This document shows, piece by piece, positions 43,401 through 63,500 of a DNA stretch of 64,000 bases. The notes beneath the pieces were generated by a model. It searched no databases. It was given only the letters and a program-made list of their open reading frames with translations, and was not told the origin of the DNA. A program made the position numbers and the translations under genes. This stretch comes from Adineta vaga (Eukaryota > Animalia > Rotifera), in the NCBI GenBank assembly GCA_021613535.1, contig CP075496.1, positions 7,130,001 to 7,194,000 of the forward strand. Direction: 5' to 3'. How positions within the stretch are numbered: position 1 is the first letter of the stretch; every line of letters starts with the position of its first letter.

Positions 43401-46142
43401 GAAATTCTACACGACTTAATGCATATTTTCCACTTGTTTCACTAACATATTCCGAACGAAGTATTTCATCACCTAGAAAAAAGAAAACCGAAGTTTAGTT
43501 CAAATCTATTATTGTTCCTTTTTTTGTATCATAACAAACCTTTTAACCAAGTAAGTTTTCCTAATGGATTGCCTCCGGTAAGAATACATTCAGCAACAAT
43601 TTTATCACCTGCTTTTATAATTTTATCTTTTGATACTCCATGCATTTCAATACTAGTAGCATCATCTATAACAGAAATAATATTGAAGATAAAGAAAAGT
43701 AATGTTCGAAAAACAAAAGCATTACAGATGATATTTAATCGTGTTGAATCGGTAACTTGATGTCCTGTTTCTGGATTTCTTGCTTCACAAGAAAGAATTT
43801 TTGTATGATAATCTCGTAATGGTTTATCTAAACCAATTGTTTTCACTAGTTGAATTGTTGTTCCAACGTATTCTCCTCGTTCTTCTAAAGGATCTACATC
43901 GCCCGTAATGATTTGTCCATCTAATTTCCAGACAACAATAGGTCGAGGATTCGATGATGTTGTTCGACAGATAAATTGTCGTGTAGTTCCTTCAACTAAT
44001 GTAGTTACACTCATACTTGAATTTGGTGTATTTCCACGAATTTGCACTGAAGATGGACCAACTAATAAGGAACAAAAAAATGAAACAGAAATTCTTCGCT
44101 AAATACAACGAAAATTCTTACATGCCACTTGTAAAGTAATATTTGTTTGTAATCTTTGTCCTAATGAGTAGAGATAGGCATTAATCACATGACATGAAAG
44201 TGTTGCATTATTATCTGCTGGTGTAATCAACATTGTAATATTATTTTCTGTTGCATTTTGTTGTGAAAGTACAACAAATGAATTATCAATTAACGTTGAT
44301 GTATCATTTCCACTTTCGATTCGATGCCATGAAAGTCGACCCAAAGGATTTCCACCACTTGTTTGACATGATAGAGTTAAACGTGATCCATTAATTAGAC
44401 GAAATGTTGATGGATAACCACGAATAATTGGAAGACTTGGTGGAGAAGTTATTTCAACATCGAATGATGTTTGAAGTTTCTGTGTATCACTTGGTAAAGT
44501 TTCATGACGAACTTCACATGTAAAACGAGTTTTATGTAAAGATATTGATGGTACCAAAGCAAGAGTACTGACGGTAGAGAAAAGTCGACCTAAAGAGATA
44601 ATATTATATGATACAAGATAATTTCTACTGATATGATCGATCATCTAATCAAGAATAATACGAAGAAAAATCAGCCCTTTGAAGAAAAGGTCATACGTAG
44701 CAAAGAAAACTTATCTGTTAACGAGCTTATTAAATAGAATATTTCGAATGATATTGACCAGAATTAATTACCGAAGTTTTCTTTGTTTTTTAGAATGTAC
44801 TTTAAGTATTAAGAGTACTCAAAAGAATATTTTATTGCTTCATTATCGTATGATTTATTGTCATAGAGAAAGACTTCTGTAATAAGTGAATTGTTTATAA
44901 GAACAGAAAGAAATAGTCAAGTTCTAGTTAATTATCATGATAATTACCTTGAGAAAATGTACGTGTTGTTGCGTTAAATTCATGTCCACTTTCATTGAAC
45001 CATTTTATTTGTGCAGCTGGTCGTGCTCCATCAACTCGACAATTAACTTGATGCATTGATTCATCATATCTCATTGTTACAACAGTCGTTTTATTTGATG
45101 GCGGTCGATCATTGATTTGTACACGTTCTGGCTGAACAAGAGTTCGAATTTGTGCAACTTGTTTCAATGCTGGTAATTCATTATAAGGTGAGACTTCACA
45201 AGCAAAGATTCCTTCATCTTCTAATTTCAATGATTCAATGAAGAAATTAAATTCGCCTCGATTTTCATCGCCAATTATAGACCAACTGGGAAAAGCAGGA
45301 AGTTGTCGATCATAACCTAGAGGAAACAAAAACACAAAAGGTCAATTGTCTTTCATGTCTTCCTAATGTTCATTAGTAGACAAAGATAGTTACACACGTG
45401 GTGAAGATAGTAGTGTTATTCTAAGTAATTCTTGTCGGCCGATAAAATATATGTGTGTCAATCAGCGGCTTTTATTCCTGCTATGATAACGAGAGTTAAT
45501 TGCTCCTCATGTTCGTTGATAGATAGACTCCACCTACTTTCTCACCAATAAGTATTCATAGTTAGTATCTAAGTAGTACCATTGTTCTTGGGGATTTTTA
45601 GCTTTTTCTTCTTCTTTTACATAGAGTGGGTGGATTATTTGTTCAAATTGAAGGGTTAATATTGCTTATCACTATCAAATAAGGCGGAGAGAACGAATCA
45701 TTCAAATACTTGCCAATGGGTAAAGAAAAAAAAGGCCGGTAATGGATGTTTATCATATGTATACACTTCACTTGTCTCACACATATATATATATATATAG
45801 TGATGATGATGATGTCAATTAGACAATTATGTTCAGTGTGCATTCATATATATATATATATACATTCGAATAGAAACTCACCCAATGCAAGTCCATCTTT
45901 TGTCCATTGAACATCACCATGAGGCGGTGCAATCACACATGGAATTGTAATATTTGAGCCAATTAATGTGGATATATCGTGAGGTTTTACCTCATAGAAT
46001 TGACCTTGACTATGGGATAAATCTAAGAGAACGAGAAAATGATAATGATGACATTTCTAATAATATAAAATAGATTCATTTAGAAAGACTTACATGGGAT
46101 TGAAAATAATACGAACAATTGAAGAAGTAGGCTTAGTGCCAT
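40435..46142 (-). CDS. nphs1-like: Nephrin/Sns/Hibris/SYG-2-like Ig-superfamily adhesion protein (~9 Ig + FN3 + TM + cytoplasmic tail)
   Basis: Signal MALSLLLQLFVLFSIP; Ig1 with VQWTKDGLALGYDR (nephrin/Neph signature); repeated GGNPLGxLxW, SNP and DDAGQYAC Ig motifs; FN3 ISWLPGFDGGARQTFQIRYR; TM LTVIVIVAVFGLFILLINIVLISLFI; C-terminus AELV* resembles a PDZ ligand. Confidence 0.88.
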
Positions 46143-52944: not shown

Positions 52945-53371
52945 AAAAAATGTTCTAATTTTATATGATCATGTCAATGAAACAAGTCCAGAATTGTTTA
53001 GAATAGTATTAACTGTACATGAAAGTAGAGGAGATAATACTTCCAAGACATAATAATACTTTTTGTGTATTTTAATGAAAAGATAAAACTATTCTAAACA
53101 TTAGTCATGTAAACATAAAAATATTTATCTCGAACTAATCTGATGTGAATGGTATAGCTGTAACATAAATAAAAATAGCATTTTTCTCAAGTAACAACAC
53201 CTTAAAATGTTTCATATTCACTAAGTTTTATTTATTAATACAGTACTCCGTGAAAAAAAAATTAATGAAATAAATTGTGTACAGAAAAAAATATTTATTG
53301 AGGAATGAGAAATTGTTAAGATTGCCATTACCACTACATACTACAGATTGTACACCGTTTTCGTGATCATC

Positions 53372-54385
53372 TTATTCAGATTGTTTATCACCTCGACGAT
53401 CACCTCTTCTGCCTGTTCCAGTATTTTGATTATCACCTGATCCGATGCGTTGACGATCACCGCTTCTGCTTGCTCCGGTATTTTGATTATCATCTGATCC
53501 GGTACGTTGACGATCACCGCTTCTGCTTGTTCCAGTATTTTGATTATCACCTGATCCGGTGCGTTGACGATTATCCGTTCCAGTTCCTTGAAAATCATCT
53601 TTTCGGACGCCTTGACGATCGTTTTTTCCAGTTCCTTGAAAGTCGTCTTTTCGAGTATCCTGACGATCAATTGTTCCAGTTCCACGAAAATCATCTTTTT
53701 TTGTACCTTGACGATCACCTTTTCTTGTGTCTTGGTGATTATCTGTTCCAGTACCTTGAAAATCATCTTTTCTTGTATCTTCGCGACCTTTTTGTCGTGA
53801 ATCACTGGGAAATCGATTATTAGGATTTAATCGGGAACCCTATAAAAACAATTGATTTCTATATCATCTATTACATAGTTTGAATTATCTCACCCATCTA
53901 TCACCACCTGAGCCAAATTCGTTATCGCGATCCTAACAAAATCAAAATTTTATTTAAATATCATTTGACATTCATAAAATAACTTGAAATAAGCTTTGAA
54001 GATTTTCTCATGTTCTTTCACGTTTTGATAGAGTATCTTATTTTTTCAAGTGTTTTCGTTATATAAAATGACTTACACGATCAAAACGACCAGATGGAAA
54101 ACCACGATCACGTTCATGGTTATGATGACGATGATGAGGTCGGAATGGAGAAGAATTAGAATTTCGACCTCTATCTGCACAACAAACGCCAAATCTATTC
54201 ACACAACAACCTCGTAATACACTCCATTGAAAGCAGCATTCTCTGGGAGAAAATGACTGTGATAGAATATCTAGTAGAATGAATAAACAAACAAACAGGT
54301 GGATGTTTATATCATGAACAAGTTGATAATACATACTTGGTAAGATAATAGCAATTAATACGAAGCAGAAGATAATCTTCATCAT
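53372..54385 (-). CDS. Secreted triple-CC protein A with hydrophilic R/D/G/Q/T repeat tail (4 exons)
   Basis: Signal MMKIIFCFVLIAIILPNILS; SFSPRECCFQWSVLRGCCVNRFGVCCAD; micro-exon DRDNEFGSGGDRW; last exon with RKDDFQGTG and GDRQRTGSGDNQNTGTSRS repeats ending GRRGDRRGDKQSE*. All splice phases are consistent. Confidence 0.8.
53390..53790 (-). repeat. Coding tandem repeats (about four ~48-nt units, then three 57-nt units)
   Basis: Recurrent aaagatgattttcaaggaactggaa and gatcgtcaacgcaccggatcaggtgataatcaaaatactgga on the minus strand. Confidence 0.85.
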
Positions 54386-55083
54386 TTCTTGAACACAATC
54401 AATGACTAGACAGAATGACATACTAGATTATACGATTACACACGTTTATATACTATGACGAAAAGGAGAAAAAAATGATATATTCACTGCGGACGGAATA
54501 GAATATCGAGTATGTGATCTAAGTATATATCTTTCTGTATGAATCAGCTAATTCAAATAAAGCAAGTTATAACATAATCTTCTATTCTGTTTTTATTTTT
54601 ACAGATGTACACTGAACGAAATTGGTATGATATAGTAAATTCTTTGTAAAAGACATAACATTAAAAGGCAATGCTGACTATTTCTTTTTTTTCTATTATG
54701 AATCGATTATTTCTATCGACTGTAACTAATATTCGATCATTGCAATGATTACTGAAGCCATTCGAGATTACTAGAAACAAATGTAGAAAAAAAAGCATAT
54801 TCTAAAAACAAGAAATCGAACCATTGATTGCAAGATGACGAATCGATTTCGTTAAAAAACTATTTATCGATAGATTAGTTCGATAAGTTTTATTTCAATT
54901 AATGTTTCACTAAATACAATCGTTCTTGCAATGTATATTTGAATATTGAGTTTGTTAAATAAATAAAACTAGAAGATTTTACATTTGAGTAAGCTTTATT
55001 TAAGAGGACATGATTATTACATTGAAATATGAAATATTAATTAGATTACAAGCGTACAATTAATTTGAAAGATACAAACATCT

Positions 55084-55656
55084 TTAACGGCCATGGCGTC
55101 TACCACCTCCACCACGATGTCCACCACCTCCACGGTGCCAGCCACCACCACCACGATGTCCACCACCTCCATGGTGCCAGCCGCCACCACCGCGACGCCA
55201 TCCACCACCACCATGACGCCATCCACCACCACCGTGACGCCAGCCACCGCCACCATGACCCCATACACCACCACCATGACGCCAGCCACCGCCACCCCAA
55301 TTCTAAGCAAACCATTCATTTTGTAAATAGCAATAAAATGACATATTACAACTTACTCTTCTCCATCCACCTCCGTAATATCCGCCACCATAATATCCAC
55401 CGCCTCCATAGTAATAATTATTTGAATAATAATTAATACCAATAGCAGTGTCATAACAACATTGGTAGTAACTATTCAGACAACAACTACCATCCTCACT
55501 CCACGTGATACAACATCCATCACCAGGAAATGATGCTCTGACAATATCTATCATCAAACAAAAGATAAAATTTGAAATTAATCGCTTATTTCTCATGAAA
55601 AACTTACTTGAAAGAATAATAGTGAGAAAAATAAAATACGTAATAGTTGAAGTCAT
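55084..55656 (-). CDS. Secreted triple-CC protein B with Tyr/Gly block and Gly/Trp/His/Arg repeat tail (3 exons)
   Basis: Signal MTSTITYFIFLTIILSNIVRA; SFPGDGCCITWSEDGSCCLNSYYQCCYD; YYSNNYYYGGGGYYGGGYYGGGWRR; last exon NWGGGGWRHGGGVWGHGGGGWRHGGGGWRHGGGGWRRGGGGWHHGGGGHRGGGGWHRGGGGHRGGGGRRHGR*. Confidence 0.8.
55090..55300 (-). repeat. GC-rich coding tandem repeat (~18-21 nt units encoding GGGGWRH/GGGGHR)
   Basis: Repeated ccaccaccaccatgacgcca-like units on the + strand; a locally GC-rich stretch. Confidence 0.85.
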
Positions 55657-55989
55657 TTCCTCTAATGTTTTGAAATGACTATGAACTTATTTCGAAGATA
55701 ACATTCGTTTATATTTCATGAAAATTGCGTAAGAATAAAGAAAAGTAAAAAGTCCATTCAGTCAGTACATTTGGTCTTTGTTTCAACCACATCGAGAACA
55801 TTCAAGACGAACAAACGATGGACGAGAGAATGAATATAGAATTTGAATCACGATATTTATAGTTTTACTTTTTCTATCAAAAGTATAAACCAATCATTCA
55901 TGGTTCTGTGTCTTTTTTTATTATCAGTGATTACGAATAGAGAATGGCGCAATAATTTAACTATCGACTTGCACAGGATTATTGCTTCT

Positions 55990-57051
55990 ATGTGTCATTT
56001 CATACTACTTTCATTACTTTATTCACATCATCAATTTATTATTCTCAGTTTCATCTCATTTTGTGATAGTTATCGTCGTTATTTTCAGCTTATCAATTGC
56101 GTAGATGGGGTAGATTTTCTTCTTTAATAAAATCTATATATTTTCGTAAAATTCTATTTTCAGACATTTTATATTACTAATCATACGGAAAAAATTACAT
56201 CAGAATTGAAAGCAAACGATGAAATAATCATTTTTGGTGTACTAATTGAACATATGTAAGTGAATATGTTGTCAATAATGTATTAGAAACATTATTTGAT
56301 CTTTCACAAAATCTTAAGTTTTCCGTGTACAGAAGAAGATAAAAAGAGCAATGTCTTTATTACGTAACTTATTTTAGAATTTATATTGATCTACTAGAAG
56401 ACAAAAACAACATTCCGTTTCATGTTCGATTTGCGAATAATATCGTTATATTTAATAATAAGAAAAAAGGTATTTGGTTAAATGAAATCAAATCACCATA
56501 CAGTCCCTTAGTAAACAATGCCACATTTGTAATCCTTATTCTTGTCAATGCACATGATAAATATAATGTAAATAATTCAATTTCTTATACTTTATCTTTT
56601 GATTCTTTCTGTCTACATACATTTACAGGTAACGTACAATAATCTAACACTTTTTAACATTGAAAAACGTGAATCATTAAGAAATGTTAATCAATTTCAT
56701 ATCTATGGTAATTTTACACTTAAATCAGTAAAAGTTATTCATATTAGTAAAGAAGGTGAATAAATTTTCTCTATGAAAACTAATGTTCTATTCTCATCTA
56801 TAGAAGATAACTCAACGAAAATTACAATCATTATTGGAATAGCAATTACATCAGTCTTAATTATTATTACAGGATTGGGAATATGTTGTATTCTACGACG
56901 ACATAAAGCGCATTCTAAATCTGAACATAGATCAAATAATGATCAAGATTCAATCATGGAAAGTGTAGGAAGTTTTCGAAGTGATCGAACAAGTCGATCA
57001 AATGTGAGACATACCCAGCAATCAATGCATTTTCCTTTCACAGAAGGTTAA
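55990..57051 (+). CDS. Galectin-domain type I membrane protein (5 exons)
   Basis: Spliced: hydrophobic leader; ELKANDEIIIFG..IYIDL..NIPFHVRF..NIVIFNNKKKGIWLNEIKSPYSPLVNNATFVILI..DKYNVTYNNLTLFNIEKR..VNQFHIYGNFTLKSV (galectin CRD strand pattern); TM ITIIIGIAITSVLIIITGLGICCIL, then RRHK and a cytosolic tail. Confidence 0.72.
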
Positions 57052-57544: not shown

Positions 57545-60500
57545 ATGGATAAATTAAGTAAATCACTTGAGGTATTAAAACTACTTTCCAATACAGCATC
57601 AGAAACATTGGCAACAAGCAATGAAAAGTATGAAGAAGAACATTTTCTTCTATTTATTTATATCTATTTTATCTATTCTTTACATTTCTTTTTTTTACAT
57701 TCAACAGATCTCGACTAGATCCAATTTCGATAAGTAAAGAAAAGATTCATCATTTAAATAATATTACTGATCTACTATGTTCACCGACATTGACGAGGTA
57801 AATAGATTGATCTATTCAATGAATATTTTTCACTTTCGATCCTTGATTTTCCTCTAGAGGTAATAATGATAATTATTTTAAATTATTAACAGCAAGTGTC
57901 GAAACATTATTTACGCATTGTGATGAAAGTGATCATGATGTACGATTAGCTGCTGAAGAAAATATCAATAAACTTATTAAAGTAAGAGAAGAAAACATTT
58001 CTTTTGTAATCCAATACATTCGATCTTTTTTTCTTTCAATGAAAAAATAGAATCTAAAAGAAACACATTTAGCCAGAGTACAAGTTGAATTACATCGAAT
58101 TATTAAACGAAATCCTAATGTTGGACCACGAGCTTTGAAAGGTTGATTGTTTATTTAGTTTTAATAATATGAAGAATTTTGTTTGAATATTTATTCAGGT
58201 GCTTTATGGAGATTTGCAGAATTAGCAAATGTTATACATGCAAAAAAGATTCGACCTTTCTTCGAACATTTATCTGCAGCTTTTTGTTCGATTGCATCTC
58301 GATCAGAAGATATTGTTCATGAGAAATTACCTGATTATTATGAGTTAATCTTTCGTATTCTTGGTCAATCAATCAATGACAAAGAGATCAAAGTAAGTGA
58401 TTATAGAAAGTTTTGCAATATCAACAATGAAAATATCTGTTTCGATTTGATTTCTACACGCGAGAATATTCTTTTACATTAGGAACTTCTTTTGGCTTAT
58501 TTGGCAAATATGGCACATGAATCACCATTGATTCGTCGTTCATCAGCTGCATGTCTGGTTGTTATCTGTCGCCATGCACGTTATCCAATGGCTGTTGCTC
58601 GTTATTTAATGACATATGCAATTGGTAAGTCCTTTTTGAATTTGAATTCAAATGTGTGAATGAAATGTTTTCATCTAGATCAATTACTTGAACATCATAA
58701 TCAAAGTGAAAGTATCCGTTTACTCAATGGCTGTCTTGCTTTGATAAAAAATCTAATTCACTTACTTGGATTGAACATTGAAGATTTCCTTTCATCATCA
58801 AAAATAATTCAACAACCATTGAATACAAGTAAAAATCTTGACACGAATGAACAACATCTACCCATTAATATTCGACAAATCATCGAAGTAAATCGTTAAC
58901 ATATAATCAATTCATTTTCTTAACTTCTTAATTCTACTAGTGCGTTGATATGATATGTTATCTTTGTTTACAACATACGGATCATAATGTTGTATCAAGT
59001 TCATTGGAAACACTTGAAGTTATACTTAAATATTCAAATTTATTTGATTTCGATCAATTATTGATTTCAACTGAAAATCAATTGATCGAAGAATCACGCG
59101 TTTATCAGACATTAAAATCAAGTAGGAAATGTTCTTTTTTTGACAAAGAAAATATATCGATATGACTAGATTATCCAACGTATCAACGTTCTTTGATTGA
59201 TATTAATGATACTCAATTTCTATTAACAAATAAAAGTAATGATGAACTAGATTCAACATCAACGATTAATAATGAAAAACGAACATCAGCAGCTAAACTT
59301 GTTGAACAACTCATTTCTAAGTAAGTCAACACAAATGATTTCTTTCAATGAAACTTCTTTCGTTTTAAGATATATTCTCAATATGGATGGAACAATTAAA
59401 AGTGATGATGAATCACGTGTTAGTATTAAAAGTACTACACTAACATGTCTTTCATATTTATCAAACATTCATCCATTTGCATTTTTCGATTCATTCGAAT
59501 ATCCTACAGAAAGTATGTTCACAGTTTTTCATGAAAGTAACTAAGCTTGTTATTGTTTTAGTTATAACATATCTTTTATCTTTACGTGAACATGGTGATC
59601 CACATTTGCGAGGTGCATTTGCTAATTTACTTGCTAAATTAATTGAAACTACTGTTCGTCTTCTTACCATATCTCCACCAATCTCATCATTAACAAATTC
59701 ATTTAATAATTCTTTCATCAATCAATGTTCAATTGTTTCCATTGATTCACAAGAAAGTTCACGATTAGGTTTGAAAAGAGAAAGATTATAATCTTGTTTT
59801 AGTTCATTCATATATCTTTTATTAATAGATATGCAATTAGGTATTTTAGCAGAATTACTTTCGACATTTCGATCATGTTTGAATGATAACAATGCACGTG
59901 TGATACATGTTTCATTAAATGCTTTACGTACATTATTATCAGTTTTATTAACAAACAGTCATGCATTGACAACTATTGCTACTGAATTATTAGAAGATGC
60001 TATACAACATAGTTCAAGTACATATGTTCTTGCTAAAGTAGAATTTAACTAATCGATCATGATAGATAAGTTCTTTCTTTTTGTATTTTATAAATAGGTT
60101 GCTCTAGCTCAACTTATTGGAAATATTGATTTTCGAATATTAACTTATCTCGAACAACAACAGCAATTTAAAAAAACAGTCAGTTTTCTTTTGCAAATAT
60201 GAAAACGTGTGTAAATAACATTAGTATACATTCTAGAATCGTGCATGGTTAGATCGATGTATTGATATTATTTTCATATTTCTTGCGGATGATGATGCAC
60301 GTGTTCGTCAAGTAGCAGCTGTGACATTTGCAAAGTAAGTTTCTAAACTATCGCAATTTTGACGAAATAAATGTGACGATAGTGTGACACTTTACATCTA
60401 ATCTCTAAGAATGATATGTACGATCAGAAGCAATTCATATTTTCATTTTCTTTCAACCATAGATTTGTTGATCAAAGTTCATTTTTGCCATGTCAATGGC

Positions 60501-63500
60501 CAATACATTCCCTATTGAAATGGATCAATTCATCCTGTCAATGGATCTATACAGTTCATCATTCATTACAACAATCGAATCCATCTATAATTGTATCGAA
60601 TGCTGAAAGTCAATGTGAAGCTATTTCATGTCTATCGACATTAATATTCGATCGTTTAGCTCAAGCATCAACTCGAATACAAATTGTGCGTTGATTTTGT
60701 TTTCGAAAGATCTTCTCTTTTAATTTAAGTACATTTTTTTTGAAGGTCGGATGTTTCGAAGGTATATCTGCACTTGTCAACGTTCTTACACCAGTTACTA
60801 TTCGATCATTTTTTCACAATCAATATGATGAACTTCGCCTATTGATACATTTTTTCAAACATCCATTTGTTTTACATGATCTTAATAATCTACAATTATT
60901 GTTCGATATGCTCAATAGAATCTTTTTAAGTAAAGCCTTTATATTGACTATGATTAATTATTCACGTTTTTCGTCATTAGATCTATCGAATTCTACAACG
61001 GAATTTCTTGATATTCAATCGGCTGAAAAAGTGTTTCACTTTTTAATAAAGTAAAATTTATCGAAAACATGTTTTCTTCCATGATCATTTGTTTTTATCT
61101 TAGAATTCTATCTATCTTTGCTTGTGTTGTCGAAGATACTACACCACCAGTACCACCATCATCAAAAATCAATTTTCCTCAATTACCTGCATCACCTCAA
61201 CAATTAAAGAAACGTATTGAAAGTAATATTGACTCGAACAAAAACGATAAAGATATCATAAGTTCTGACAGCACAAATTCTTTGACAACAAGTAAAGATT
61301 CCACACTTACATCTAGTACAAGCAATACTGATAAAGATAAAAAAGTTAATCGAACACAATTAGGCGCTTTTGGAAATAATCCATCCATGATGAAATTATT
61401 TGATCTAATTCGACAATCCTATCAAACACATAAAAGTTTAATAAGTTCATCCGAAACCGATCGTTTTGGTCAATTACTTTCATCAACATTAATTTGTATT
61501 AAATCGGTTATAAATCTTATTTCAATACAAGATATATTAAAACATTTAGAAGAAACATTGACTTATCTTAAATCGACATTTAATATTGATAAGATTAATA
61601 CTATTCAATGTACACAAGAAGTAAGTTTTCTCATTAGAAATTTACATTGATATGTAAGAGATTTTCTTCGTCTAGTTTTTACAAAATCTTCATCAACTTG
61701 CAGTAAGTTCTGTAACACCAAATGAAATGAAATCTTCTAATCCTTCCGTACAAAACTCGACAAATAATTCGTTAACAAATATTCATACAATTACTATTCG
61801 ACATCCTATGATGTATCTATTTGGATCACGTCATACATCAAGTGTTGCAAGTGATCAATCGATTGAAAATACAAACATTCGAGAGTATTTCATTTGAAAG
61901 AATCCTTTGAAAAACTGATCTACTCTTTTCCTATTAGATTTTATTTAACTCTAAAACAACGAAAAACAATTGATCATCTTAAACGTCCACCCAATCGAAC
62001 TGAACGTGGAAAAATTGGAAGTTATATTCGTCTTTTCGAAGCCATTGTCATTCTTAGTTTAAAAAAATATGTCAATTCAAATGAAACCGAATTTCAAGCA
62101 TCCGTCCTAGATTTACTTGTTCAATTATTACTTCTTCGTGTTAATTATAGTTTATTAGATGCTGATGAAGTTTGTTTCTTTTATTTTTCAACCTTCATTT
62201 TCTTTTCATTTATCTATTTTAGCATTTTCTCACTCATATAACCAATCAACTTGAAATGATCGAAGAAACAATAGCAGGTTATGATGTTTCATCACATTTT
62301 ATCTATCGTATTGCTGAATTTCTCATGATGTTATCACATGATACACTTCATTCAAAACAAGTGATTAAAGTACAAGATTTAATCAAACATTGTGATTTAT
62401 TATTAGCAAGTGGACACGAACCAGAAACACATGGTAAAAAAAAGAAGAGGAAAATAAATTGATTTTTAAATCCAAAACAAATTGTTATTTAGCTTTAGCA
62501 GCATTAGAACCAGTTGTCTACGATCTTTTTCTCGTTCGATTAAAAACTGATAATAAAGAATTAGAAGCACAACGAATGGTAATCGTTCAAACATTGTTAA
62601 AACTTGTTCGATATAATAAAGTAAAATTTTCTCACCCAAAATAATTCATGAAATCTCTTGTAAATATCTTCTAGGCTTTACAATTGTTAACTGTTATACT
62701 CGATAGTGTTCGAAGTGAAGTCGATAAATGGAAACGACTTTCTCGACAAATTGTAGATGTCTTACTTGTTCATTTACAATCAAATATTTTCATCAATTCA
62801 TCGAAGGTTAGTTTTAATTTGTTCGAATTATGATTTTATTGAATGTTAATTCTTAGACTCAATCTTTATTGGATATTTATTCAACACAATTAGCATTATT
62901 CGATGTTGTATCATCAGTTGCATTACGTCCAATTGATCCATTTGTTGCTGCTTTTCAAACATTGGCAAATCGAACTGTTTGTTAATGTTTTCATTTGAAA
63001 AAAATTTGTTGAATGTTTTCTTTTCTCCAAAGGATTTGGATCGACATTCAATTAGTCGATGGTTAATGAATATTAATGTTGTCCTTCGATGTCTTATACA
63101 AAATTCTACAGAAGATGCAATATTAGTACGATGGAAAGATGCTTTAACATCGAATAGTGTCATACGAGACGAGAGTTTCAGCTCGTATGTATTAAAGAAG
63201 AATCTATACTAAGATAAAACAAACGAATAATTTTGTGTATTTTAGAGCATTACTTCGAATTTTACATGATGTTACTTTACGTCTGCTGACGACTACACGA
63301 CAATCACGTGGACAGATTGATATGATATTGGTCATTTTTGCTTCGGATTATCTTTATTTATTAATGTACATCGTTGAGAATGGTAAAGAATTTCAATGAT
63401 TGATTATATGTTAAACAGAAATGTCTAAATAGTTCTATAAACATCATTATAGCTAGAATCTGCATTTAGTAGTTCGCATGTTCATTTGTTGATTGCATTT

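Follow-up and report, generated by a model that had tools for sequence, protein, structure and literature searches.

A tandem gene pair of Adineta encoding predicted secreted proteins with a conserved six-cysteine head and unrelated low-complexity tails

Interest in bdelloid rotifers comes from their desiccation tolerance, their ancient asexuality and their escape from fungal parasites, and to our knowledge very little molecular information exists on the effectors and adhesives that they secrete. Two neighbouring genes of Adineta vaga, here called A and B, lie in the 64,000-nucleotide stretch of DNA that was analysed (the window); both carry the same short cysteine-rich head on tails that bear no relation to each other. 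We asked whether the genes are real, what the head is and which roles the tails would suit.

Gene models of the tandem pair

The two genes share one orientation, on the minus strand at positions 53372-55656 of the window, and stand in tandem with B upstream and A downstream; all features given below are on this strand. A first-pass annotation had described two adjacent, co-oriented genes, each with a signal peptide split by a phase-1 intron past codon 16. Our gene models bear this out, with GT..AG borders in five of the five introns and AAT (Asn) as the split codon in both genes. Signal peptides were judged by eye, without a predictor, and the spliced products were represented by the database proteins P0006, P0008 and P0011.

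Exon 1 of gene B (55608..55656) carries the start codon, 16 signal-peptide codons and the first base of the split Asn codon, and is followed by a phase-1 intron of 60 nt (55548..55607, GTAAGT..AG). The same layout of 16 codons and a phase-1 intron is seen in A. ricciae (P0008), A. steineri (P0011) and L056. Exon 2 (55357..55547) encodes the end of the signal peptide, the six-cysteine head, whose CC-x8-CC-x6-CC core is at 55456..55515, and a Tyr/Gly block that ends in WRR. After a phase-0 intron of 54 nt (55303..55356, again GTAAGT..AG), exon 3 (55084..55302) adds 72 residues of GGGG-W-(R/H)-H type repeats, which end in RRHGR before the stop codon. A TATA box (55708..55713) is located 57 nt upstream of the start codon, and an AATAAA signal (54995..55000) 84 nt past the stop. 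In L056, a TATATAAAC-type box stands at a distance like that of the gene B TATA box.

Gene A begins in the same manner, with 16 signal-peptide codons and the first base of the split Asn codon in exon 1 (54337..54385); its start was placed according to the orthologues, L056 and P0014 beginning at the same position. Intron 1 (54271..54336, 66 nt, GTATGT..AG) is in phase 1. The six-cysteine head (core CC-x8-CC-x6-CC at 54179..54238) and then a His/Arg-rich stretch are encoded by exon 2 (54077..54270; residues 30-93 of P0006). Introns 2 and 3 measure 144 nt and 54 nt and flank exon 3 (53894..53932), which contributes 13 residues (94-106 of P0006), while exon 4 (53372..53839) encodes a polyampholyte repeat tail of 155 residues and the stop codon. 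The TATA box (54447..54452) lies 67 nt upstream of the start codon and the AATAAA signal (53294..53299) 73 nt past the stop.

Gene A corresponds to the public A. vaga protein UJR31808.1 (P0006) with identical splice junctions, and the exon translations map onto it end to end. For gene B, the annotated orthologues of A. ricciae and of A. steineri are divided into exons in the same way. These observations support the view that A and B are real, spliced and paralogous genes, predicted to encode secreted proteins in which a conserved six-cysteine head is followed by unrelated low-complexity tails.

Gene B itself has no match among public proteins of 64-205 aa, and the tails are tandem repeats; both points would suit a non-functional origin, in which A and B are chance open reading frames or decaying pseudogenes in repeat-rich DNA. 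However, several species share the exon structure and the synteny, the dN/dS of the head is below 1, the frames are intact, and canonical signals are present for splicing, TATA box and poly(A). We regard a non-functional origin as very unlikely, with next to no probability left to it.

Family size and selection on the head

In both proteins the head follows the signal peptide, is about 26 residues in length and contains three Cys-Cys pairs; mature A and B have no cysteine outside these six. The ungapped motif that had been quoted as common to the two heads is present as quoted in both genes, and the spacing CC-x8-CC-x6-CC is identical in all 20 family members that were aligned. Comparison across species places the head under purifying selection, with dN/dS values of 0.34 (B-type) and 0.54 (A-type), and indicates that the tails differ from species to species through turnover of their repeat units. 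The six cysteines would be expected to form three internal disulfides, giving a small hairpin ladder.

As a DNA pattern, the three Cys pairs by themselves are uninformative in this genome (583 matches against 278 for the reversed control), with TGT/TGC repeats dominating the result, and addition of the Trp and the Asn made the search usable. The 100.8-Mb genome contains exactly two matches to the pattern CC-x2-W-x5-CC-x-N-x4-CC, both at this locus, and none to its reversed control. Searching 1.84 billion representative proteins with a profile of the head gave 14 matches, namely 13 family members and one low-complexity artefact. The named members belong to A. vaga, A. ricciae and A. steineri, and the others are on unassigned environmental contigs. 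A word search with A. ricciae P0008 returned that protein alone, the result being swamped by glycine-rich words, and its look-alikes in the ESM Atlas (scores of at most 0.82) were all bacterial hypothetical proteins, which gave no lead.

The family appears to be tiny, with two genes per haploid genome, and has so far been seen only in Adineta and on the unassigned environmental contigs. The order B then A is conserved, together with galectin and huntingtin genes as neighbours. Pattern and profile scans of this kind had been proposed in the first-pass annotation; they confirm that a family exists, but neither a large size (two copies per genome and 13 relatives) nor a diversity of tails was found, as the tails fall into two classes.

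No description of the head family was found in Pfam, among PDB sequences or in the literature searched. No paper found in the literature search mentions the accessions, and searches for Adineta with granulin and for rotifer glycine-rich antimicrobial peptides returned nothing relevant. The earlier suggestion of an undescribed family stands, and our verdict is that A and B represent an undescribed, lineage-restricted and putatively secreted family.

Comparison of the head with granulin

The motif, which the first-pass annotation did not recognise as a known domain, is not without precedent. The central three-Cys-pair spacing of the granulin module (PF00396) is exactly CC-x8-CC-x6-CC, as in the head, and the granulin modules of A. 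vaga itself have the same spacing; granulins are also secreted. In both window copies the likeness extends to the x-D after the third pair, although this Asp is not conserved across the family, which weighs against common descent. The full granulin framework, C-x5-6-C-x5-CC-x8-CC-x6-CC-x5-CC-x4-C-x5-6-C, has twelve cysteines, whereas the head has the central six only, with none upstream or downstream in mature A or B. Outside the cysteines there is little similarity, and the long tails of low complexity that follow the head have no counterpart in granulins.

It is possible, if doubtful, that the head descends from a granulin module by truncation and kept the central three Cys pairs only, and that A and B are divergent members of the granulin family; the alternative would be a convergent knot. 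Granulin is the sole Pfam family matched by any head, and the matches are weak. PF00396 matches three of 15 heads (best E 0.0021), and the matches stay below the gathering cut-off of 20.9 bits. The head of gene A scores 14.8 bits (E 0.034), which does not make A a granulin by Pfam, and the head of gene B has no Pfam match. A genome-wide scan with PF00396 found 23 places, and neither head was among them. In hhalign, the head aligned with A. vaga granulins with a probability of 71-74% and a score of 23.9, all three pairs being in register, and descent is further favoured by local matches, of which GVCC-x-DR in gene A is an example. When the alignment was permuted with the Cys columns fixed, the mean score was 17, and 16-20 of 300 trials (5-7%) reached the real score. 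Since the permuted mean of 17 compares with 23.9 observed, most of the signal lies in the cysteine frame. We infer that the granulin likeness of the head comes mainly from its cysteine framework, and these matches lend weak support to homology.

Profile searches, and less firmly structure searches, speak against granulin descent. A profile of A. vaga granulins, made for comparison, finds PDB granulins at 1e-14, whereas the head profile finds no granulin among the 1.84 billion proteins and no match among PDB sequences at E up to 10. Granulins fold as stacked beta-hairpins. With a model of the head (pLDDT 70.5, short bridges only), neither Foldseek (E up to 10) nor VIA (Z of at least 2) returned a match, and an ESM Atlas fold search gave nothing meaningful, which for 32 residues is a weak negative; a control model of an A. 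vaga granulin with equal confidence (pLDDT 68) found granulins at ranks 1-7 (Z 4.3). Of the domain and fold searches suggested earlier, the former thus gave the granulin match below the Pfam cut-off and the latter no match. Gene structure is not shared either, the small granulin gene of A. vaga being a single exon. On the other side, the solved N-terminal half-granulin peptides (1g26, 1qgm and 7jiy) demonstrate that short fragments can fold.

Tails and candidate roles of the pair

The tails of both genes are glycine-rich, of low complexity and derived from tandem repeats in the DNA, and the open reading frames listed over them are wrong-frame shadows, as the first-pass annotation had recognized. 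Its description of the tails as unrelated also holds, while their placement on separate phase-0 exons is correct in part, with the Tyr/Gly block in B and the His-rich stretch in A residing on the head exon. Gene A has two tail exons; exon 4 is made of 48/24-nt and 57-nt DNA tandem repeats and encodes 33 Lys and Arg residues against 27 Asp and Glu. Exon 3 of gene B encodes 57% Gly, 15% Arg, 14% His and 11% Trp, with a net charge of +11. A Pfam search with the tails returned a chance CofB match only (E 0.87). To call the tails interchangeable was an overstatement, since there are two tail classes only and each keeps to its paralogue across species. The grammar of the B-type tail is retained between species, GGGG(W/F)HH, GGGGGHR and YYGGRR repeat types recurring, with the environmental L064 tail consisting of (YYGGRR)n, and the C-terminal ends RRHGR, RHRG and RRG are conserved.

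In B, the Gly and basic residue at the C-terminus are suggestive of an amidation signal, and in A. vaga gene A units of the DDFQGTGT type are flanked by RK or KK. Both features could suggest that A and B are precursors of neuropeptides or peptide hormones, the repeats being cut at basic residues into small signalling peptides. Within a precursor, however, it is normally the signalling peptides that are conserved, and in the orthologous A-type tails of L056, L058 and L064 neither the dibasic sites nor the unit sequences are conserved. We give such precursors a slim chance.

Judged from sequence, the role of B narrows to one that is either cationic antimicrobial-like or adhesive/material-like. 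Shepherins, holotricin-3 and tenecin-3 are Gly-rich cationic antimicrobial peptides, to which armadillidin also belongs. Armadillidin has 47% Gly and a sixfold GGGF(H/N)(R/S) repeat, and is cationic and membranolytic (PMC5031766). The tail of B is likewise about half Gly, combines a Gly run with an aromatic residue and His/Arg in its repeat and is strongly cationic. Exon 3 of gene B falls within the composition of armadillidin-type peptides, with GGGG(W/F)HH and GGGGGHR in the orthologues, and B shares with such peptides a secretion signal (judged by eye) and a likely C-terminal amidation signal. This likeness is compositional and not one of homology; these peptides have no six-cysteine N-terminal head, and B adds the Tyr/Gly block.

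It seems plausible, as a tentative reading, that B is the precursor of a host-defence peptide. Its head, which is acidic (net -4) and would be locked by disulfides, could act as a conserved pro-piece or a folded cap, and the Tyr/Gly block together with the cationic Gly-aromatic-His/Arg repeats could bind and disturb anionic microbial surfaces, in the manner of armadillidin, shepherin and other Gly/His-rich peptides. Gene A would be a sister gene whose tail has turned into a hydrophilic polyampholyte. Cathelicidin-type precursors, penaeidins and type II crustins also join a conserved disulfide-bonded domain to a variable linear domain. In A and B the variable part is similarly, in part, on its own exon, and B pairs an acidic head with a cationic tail; those families have no sequence or fold relation to A and B, which have two tail classes and no conserved cleavage site. 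The NLP/CNC antifungal peptides of Caenorhabditis elegans are Gly/Tyr-rich, with YGG-type repeats containing Trp and Arg, and are secreted products of tandem, lineage-specific genes. They resemble A and B in secretion, in gene arrangement and, for B, in the Tyr/Gly repeats, but are much shorter, have no cysteine head and show no detectable homology.

Against host defence, gene A combines the same head with a tail that is not cationic, so that a head acting as pro-piece fails to account for the whole family, and no dibasic cleavage site between head and tail is conserved across the species compared. The Gly/Tyr/Arg/Trp/His composition is also in keeping with cationic proteins that adhere or bear load. 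Mussel foot protein 3 and the His-rich proteins of squid beak are adhesive or structural proteins of this cationic Gly/Tyr/Arg/Trp/His type. While host defence is our best guess, it is nearly as likely that A and B each supply one component of a secreted material, for instance an adhesive of the pedal glands, a mucus coat, an eggshell or a jaw matrix. The heads would then cross-link or oligomerise through disulfides, and the Gly-rich tails with their aromatic and Arg/His stickers would bring about coacervation and surface binding, B being the polycation and A its polyampholyte partner.

A role in such a material accounts for both genes, with their common head, adjacent and co-oriented arrangement and similar TATA promoters, and both tails are sticker-and-spacer sequences. 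The tails are also like mussel foot protein 3 and the squid-beak proteins, and the B-type tail of L064 is especially adhesive-like. The Tyr/Gly blocks and Arg/Trp/His/Gly tracts resemble the Nereis jaw protein Nvjp-1, a Gly/Tyr/His-type structural protein with which the composition of B was compared (PMC9465683). Like A and B, these three kinds of protein are secreted, disordered, small, basic, repetitive and Gly-rich, with aromatic and Arg/His stickers; the likeness comes from composition alone, as they have no homology to A and B and the head motif is absent. Other observations count against a material role. No tyrosinase or peroxidase gene is located nearby, the neighbours being galectin and huntingtin, each gene is present in a single copy per haploid genome, the products are small, and cysteines that are even in number and confined to about 26 residues would favour internal over intermolecular disulfides.

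A bolder proposal, which we consider rather unlikely as a whole, is that the head forms a three-disulfide ladder on its own, a 'mini-granulin' that would be a minimal and so far undescribed fold. In Adineta it would cap the N terminus of two tails that are secreted together and undergo phase separation. The pair would then represent either a new chimeric class of antifungal peptides in bdelloids or the first molecular components of a rotifer adhesive or coating.

The A/B pair offers an apparently genus-restricted, putatively secreted family as a clean and testable case. A minimal domain with its six cysteines spaced as in the core of granulin bears on the origin or shrinkage of small disulfide ladders, and the size of the head is within reach of chemical synthesis and NMR. 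The tails look like Gly/His-rich antifungal peptides or cationic bio-adhesives, and either outcome would provide a first point of entry to an extracellular function specific to rotifers.

Gene models and repeat tails

Two adjacent, co-oriented genes are located at 53372-55656, as the first-pass annotation had proposed. They lie on the minus strand of the window (G000:C4:7130001-7194000), which belongs to an assembly of six contigs (100.8 Mb, ~30% G+C). Gene B comprises exons at 55656-55608, 55547-55357 and 55302-55084, and gene A exons at 54385-54337, 54270-54077, 53932-53894 and 53839-53372, all on the minus strand. The first exon of each gene consists of 16 codons plus one base, so the early intron after codon 16 is borne out, and the codon split by it, AAT, is common to both genes. 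The introns of B and A measure 60, 54, 66, 144 and 54 nt, all five bounded by GT..AG, and the exon translations agree with those quoted previously. A TATA box lies 57 nt upstream of the start codon in one gene and 67 nt in the other, while AATAAA follows the stop codon at 84 nt in one and 73 nt in the other.

The protein encoded by gene A matches UJR31808.1 exactly (annotated as "hypothetical protein I4U23_019285 [Adineta vaga]"; P0006 in our protein set), which assigns the genome to the bdelloid rotifer Adineta vaga. Since the four exon translations map end to end on its residues 13-28, 30-93, 94-106 and 107-261, the public annotation has exactly these junctions. The public start lies 12 codons upstream, and these extra codons (54386-54421, minus strand) follow the TATA box and precede what is probably the real start codon; comparison with the orthologues favours the 16-codon first exon over the annotated start. 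Gene B (55084-55656, minus strand) has no match among public proteins of 64-205 aa and is therefore probably unannotated in A. vaga, while its orthologues in A. ricciae and A. steineri are annotated proteins. Gene B was analysed by its single exons, with the database proteins P0006, P0008 (A. ricciae) and P0011 (A. steineri, B-type) standing for spliced products.

The tails of both genes are tandem repeats at the DNA level, with 57-nt units (3.1 copies, 90% matches) and 48/24-nt units in A and 21/42/63-nt units in B. Across species the grammar of the tail is fixed for each paralogue while the repeat units change. B-type tails always carry a Tyr/Gly block followed by four to six glycines, an aromatic residue and His/Arg, and end in RRHGR, RHRG or RRG. 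A-type tails always carry a His-rich stretch and a short exon containing an RFD-like motif, followed by hydrophilic Gly/Gln/Asn/Arg/Asp repeats with scattered Phe. In the last exon of B, Gly makes up 57% of residues, Arg 15%, His 14% and Trp 11%, for a net charge of +11; the last exon of A has 33 basic versus 27 acidic residues. The tails thus form two stable classes, and their earlier description as interchangeable is too strong because each paralogue keeps its own class across species.

A two-gene family and its genomic setting

In the whole genome, the complete motif as a DNA pattern is present at two places, both in these genes, and the reversed control pattern at none; when either head was searched as protein against the genome, only the other head came back. 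The paired-gene observation is thereby confirmed as far beyond chance. A word search with the open frame of B found three relatives on metagenome contigs, and scanning JGI and ENA metagenomes by pattern gave twelve further loci. A head profile of 32 positions, built from six heads, gave 14 matches at E 0.001 or better among 1.84 billion representative proteins, namely 13 family members and one CC-repeat artefact, with no granulin among them. The family scan by pattern and profile suggested at first pass thus yielded two genomic places, 13 relatives and two tail types, with no third type at any relative found. Named members come only from A. vaga, A. ricciae (CAF1362451.1, CAF1043937.1, CAF1355061.1) and A. 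steineri (CAF3598132.1), and the annotated proteins of the latter two share the same junction of 16 residues, Asn and head. This is a previously undescribed two-gene family; its restriction to Adineta is judged from annotated proteins, which are weak evidence of absence elsewhere because even gene B of A. vaga is missing from public proteins.

At locus L056, one B-type and one A-type gene have the order, orientation and exon layout seen here, down to the short exon 3 of A, and tblastx shows this locus to be collinear with 57.7-52.5 kb of the window. B followed by A is also found on L064, L065, L066 and L069, and tblastx shows huntingtin and galectin neighbours common to the window and the A. 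steineri locus L072. Given this shared order and these shared neighbours, the duplication that gave rise to A and B is older than the divergence of these species.

Exons of the huntingtin homologue (Htt N-HEAT domains) lie at 58183-62900 on the plus strand and are syntenic with L072. The galectin-like gene (55930-57000, plus strand; PF00337, E 4e-7 for 56367-56579) is head-to-head with gene B, and this divergent layout is also present in L072 and the environmental contig L055. At 44099-44644 on the minus strand, an open frame encodes an immunoglobulin C2-set domain (PF08205, E 1.4e-10). A B-type gene of A. ricciae (L070:8001-8525) resides at another locus, flanked by a GPCR gene and NHL-repeat genes, and no A-type gene lies within 8 kb of it. 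The two A. ricciae copies differ by Trp-to-Phe changes spread over the repeats, which is suggestive of concerted evolution. An environmental relative, L062, has two copies of the B-type (49-144 and 2701-2796), separated by about 2.6 kb, whose heads are identical and whose repeat tails differ; they arose by recent tandem duplication, and their tails have turned over since.

The head and the granulin framework

All 20 members compared keep the six cysteines, and Gly-Asp-Gly ahead of the first pair is almost fully conserved, the most divergent head being that of gene A itself. Pairwise comparison of the heads gives a dN/dS of 0.34 among B-type and 0.54 among A-type members (mean dS ~0.7), and the head is therefore under purifying selection.

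The motif had not been recognised as a known domain at first pass. Its spacing, CC-x8-CC-x6-CC, is the centre of the granulin framework, and Granulin is the sole Pfam family matched (3 of 15 heads, best E 0.0021); the A head scores 14.8 bits (E 0.034) against a cut-off of 20.9 bits. A. vaga granulins, located by a genome scan with PF00396, have the same spacing and some local likeness. They include multi-module genes on C3 and C6 and a pair of single-module secreted granulins (G000:C5:10310376-10310498 and G000:C2:8585529-8585651), with 81% identity between the modules of the pair; the gene on C5 has a single exon. Alignment of the head profile with three A. vaga granulin modules by hhalign gave probabilities of 71-74%, in register. 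This signal is mostly the cysteine frame, because permuting the non-cysteine columns with the cysteines fixed still gave a mean of ~17 against the real 23.9, with 5-7% of permutations reaching the real value.

Up to E 10, the head profile matched nothing in PDB, while a profile of A. vaga granulin matched human granulins at 1e-14. In the fold check proposed earlier, the head as modelled by AlphaFold (pLDDT 70.5) found nothing meaningful by Foldseek, VIA-align or Atlas, a weak negative for 32 residues, whereas the model of an authentic A. vaga granulin module (pLDDT 68), run as a control, placed granulin entries at Foldseek ranks 1-7 and gave Z 4.3 against zebrafish granulin AaE. The core framework of granulins is present in the head, which does not qualify as a granulin. 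Descent from a granulin is doubtful, and the small granulin gene of A. vaga has one exon and no signal-peptide intron; the head resembles the granulin core in reduced form.

Possible roles of the two proteins

A and B are secreted proteins, with signal peptides called by eye, a constrained six-cysteine head and disordered tails built from repeats. The six cysteines of the head would pair internally, and pairing in the order 1-3, 2-5, 4-6 would correspond to the ends of the granulin ladder. That stacks this short can fold is shown by solved structures of half-granulin peptides.

Two readings fit B: host defence, which is tentatively preferred, and a role of A and B as material, which is nearly as likely. 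For the latter, the chemistry of B fits cationic adhesives such as mussel foot protein 3 and His-rich structural proteins. Nvjp-1 is a His-rich structural protein of this kind (PMC9465683). Such a role would also explain why A has the same head despite its non-cationic tail, and lies beside B with a similar promoter. On the preferred reading, B may be a host-defence protein. Armadillidin is a membranolytic peptide of 47% Gly with a sixfold GGGF(H/N)(R/S) repeat (PMC5031766). The acidic head of B (net -4, pI 4.1), its strongly cationic Gly-aromatic-His/Arg repeat and its terminal Gly and basic residue match that design. Other Gly/His-rich peptides, which B matches in composition, are mostly antifungal, and the main known enemies of bdelloids are fungi.
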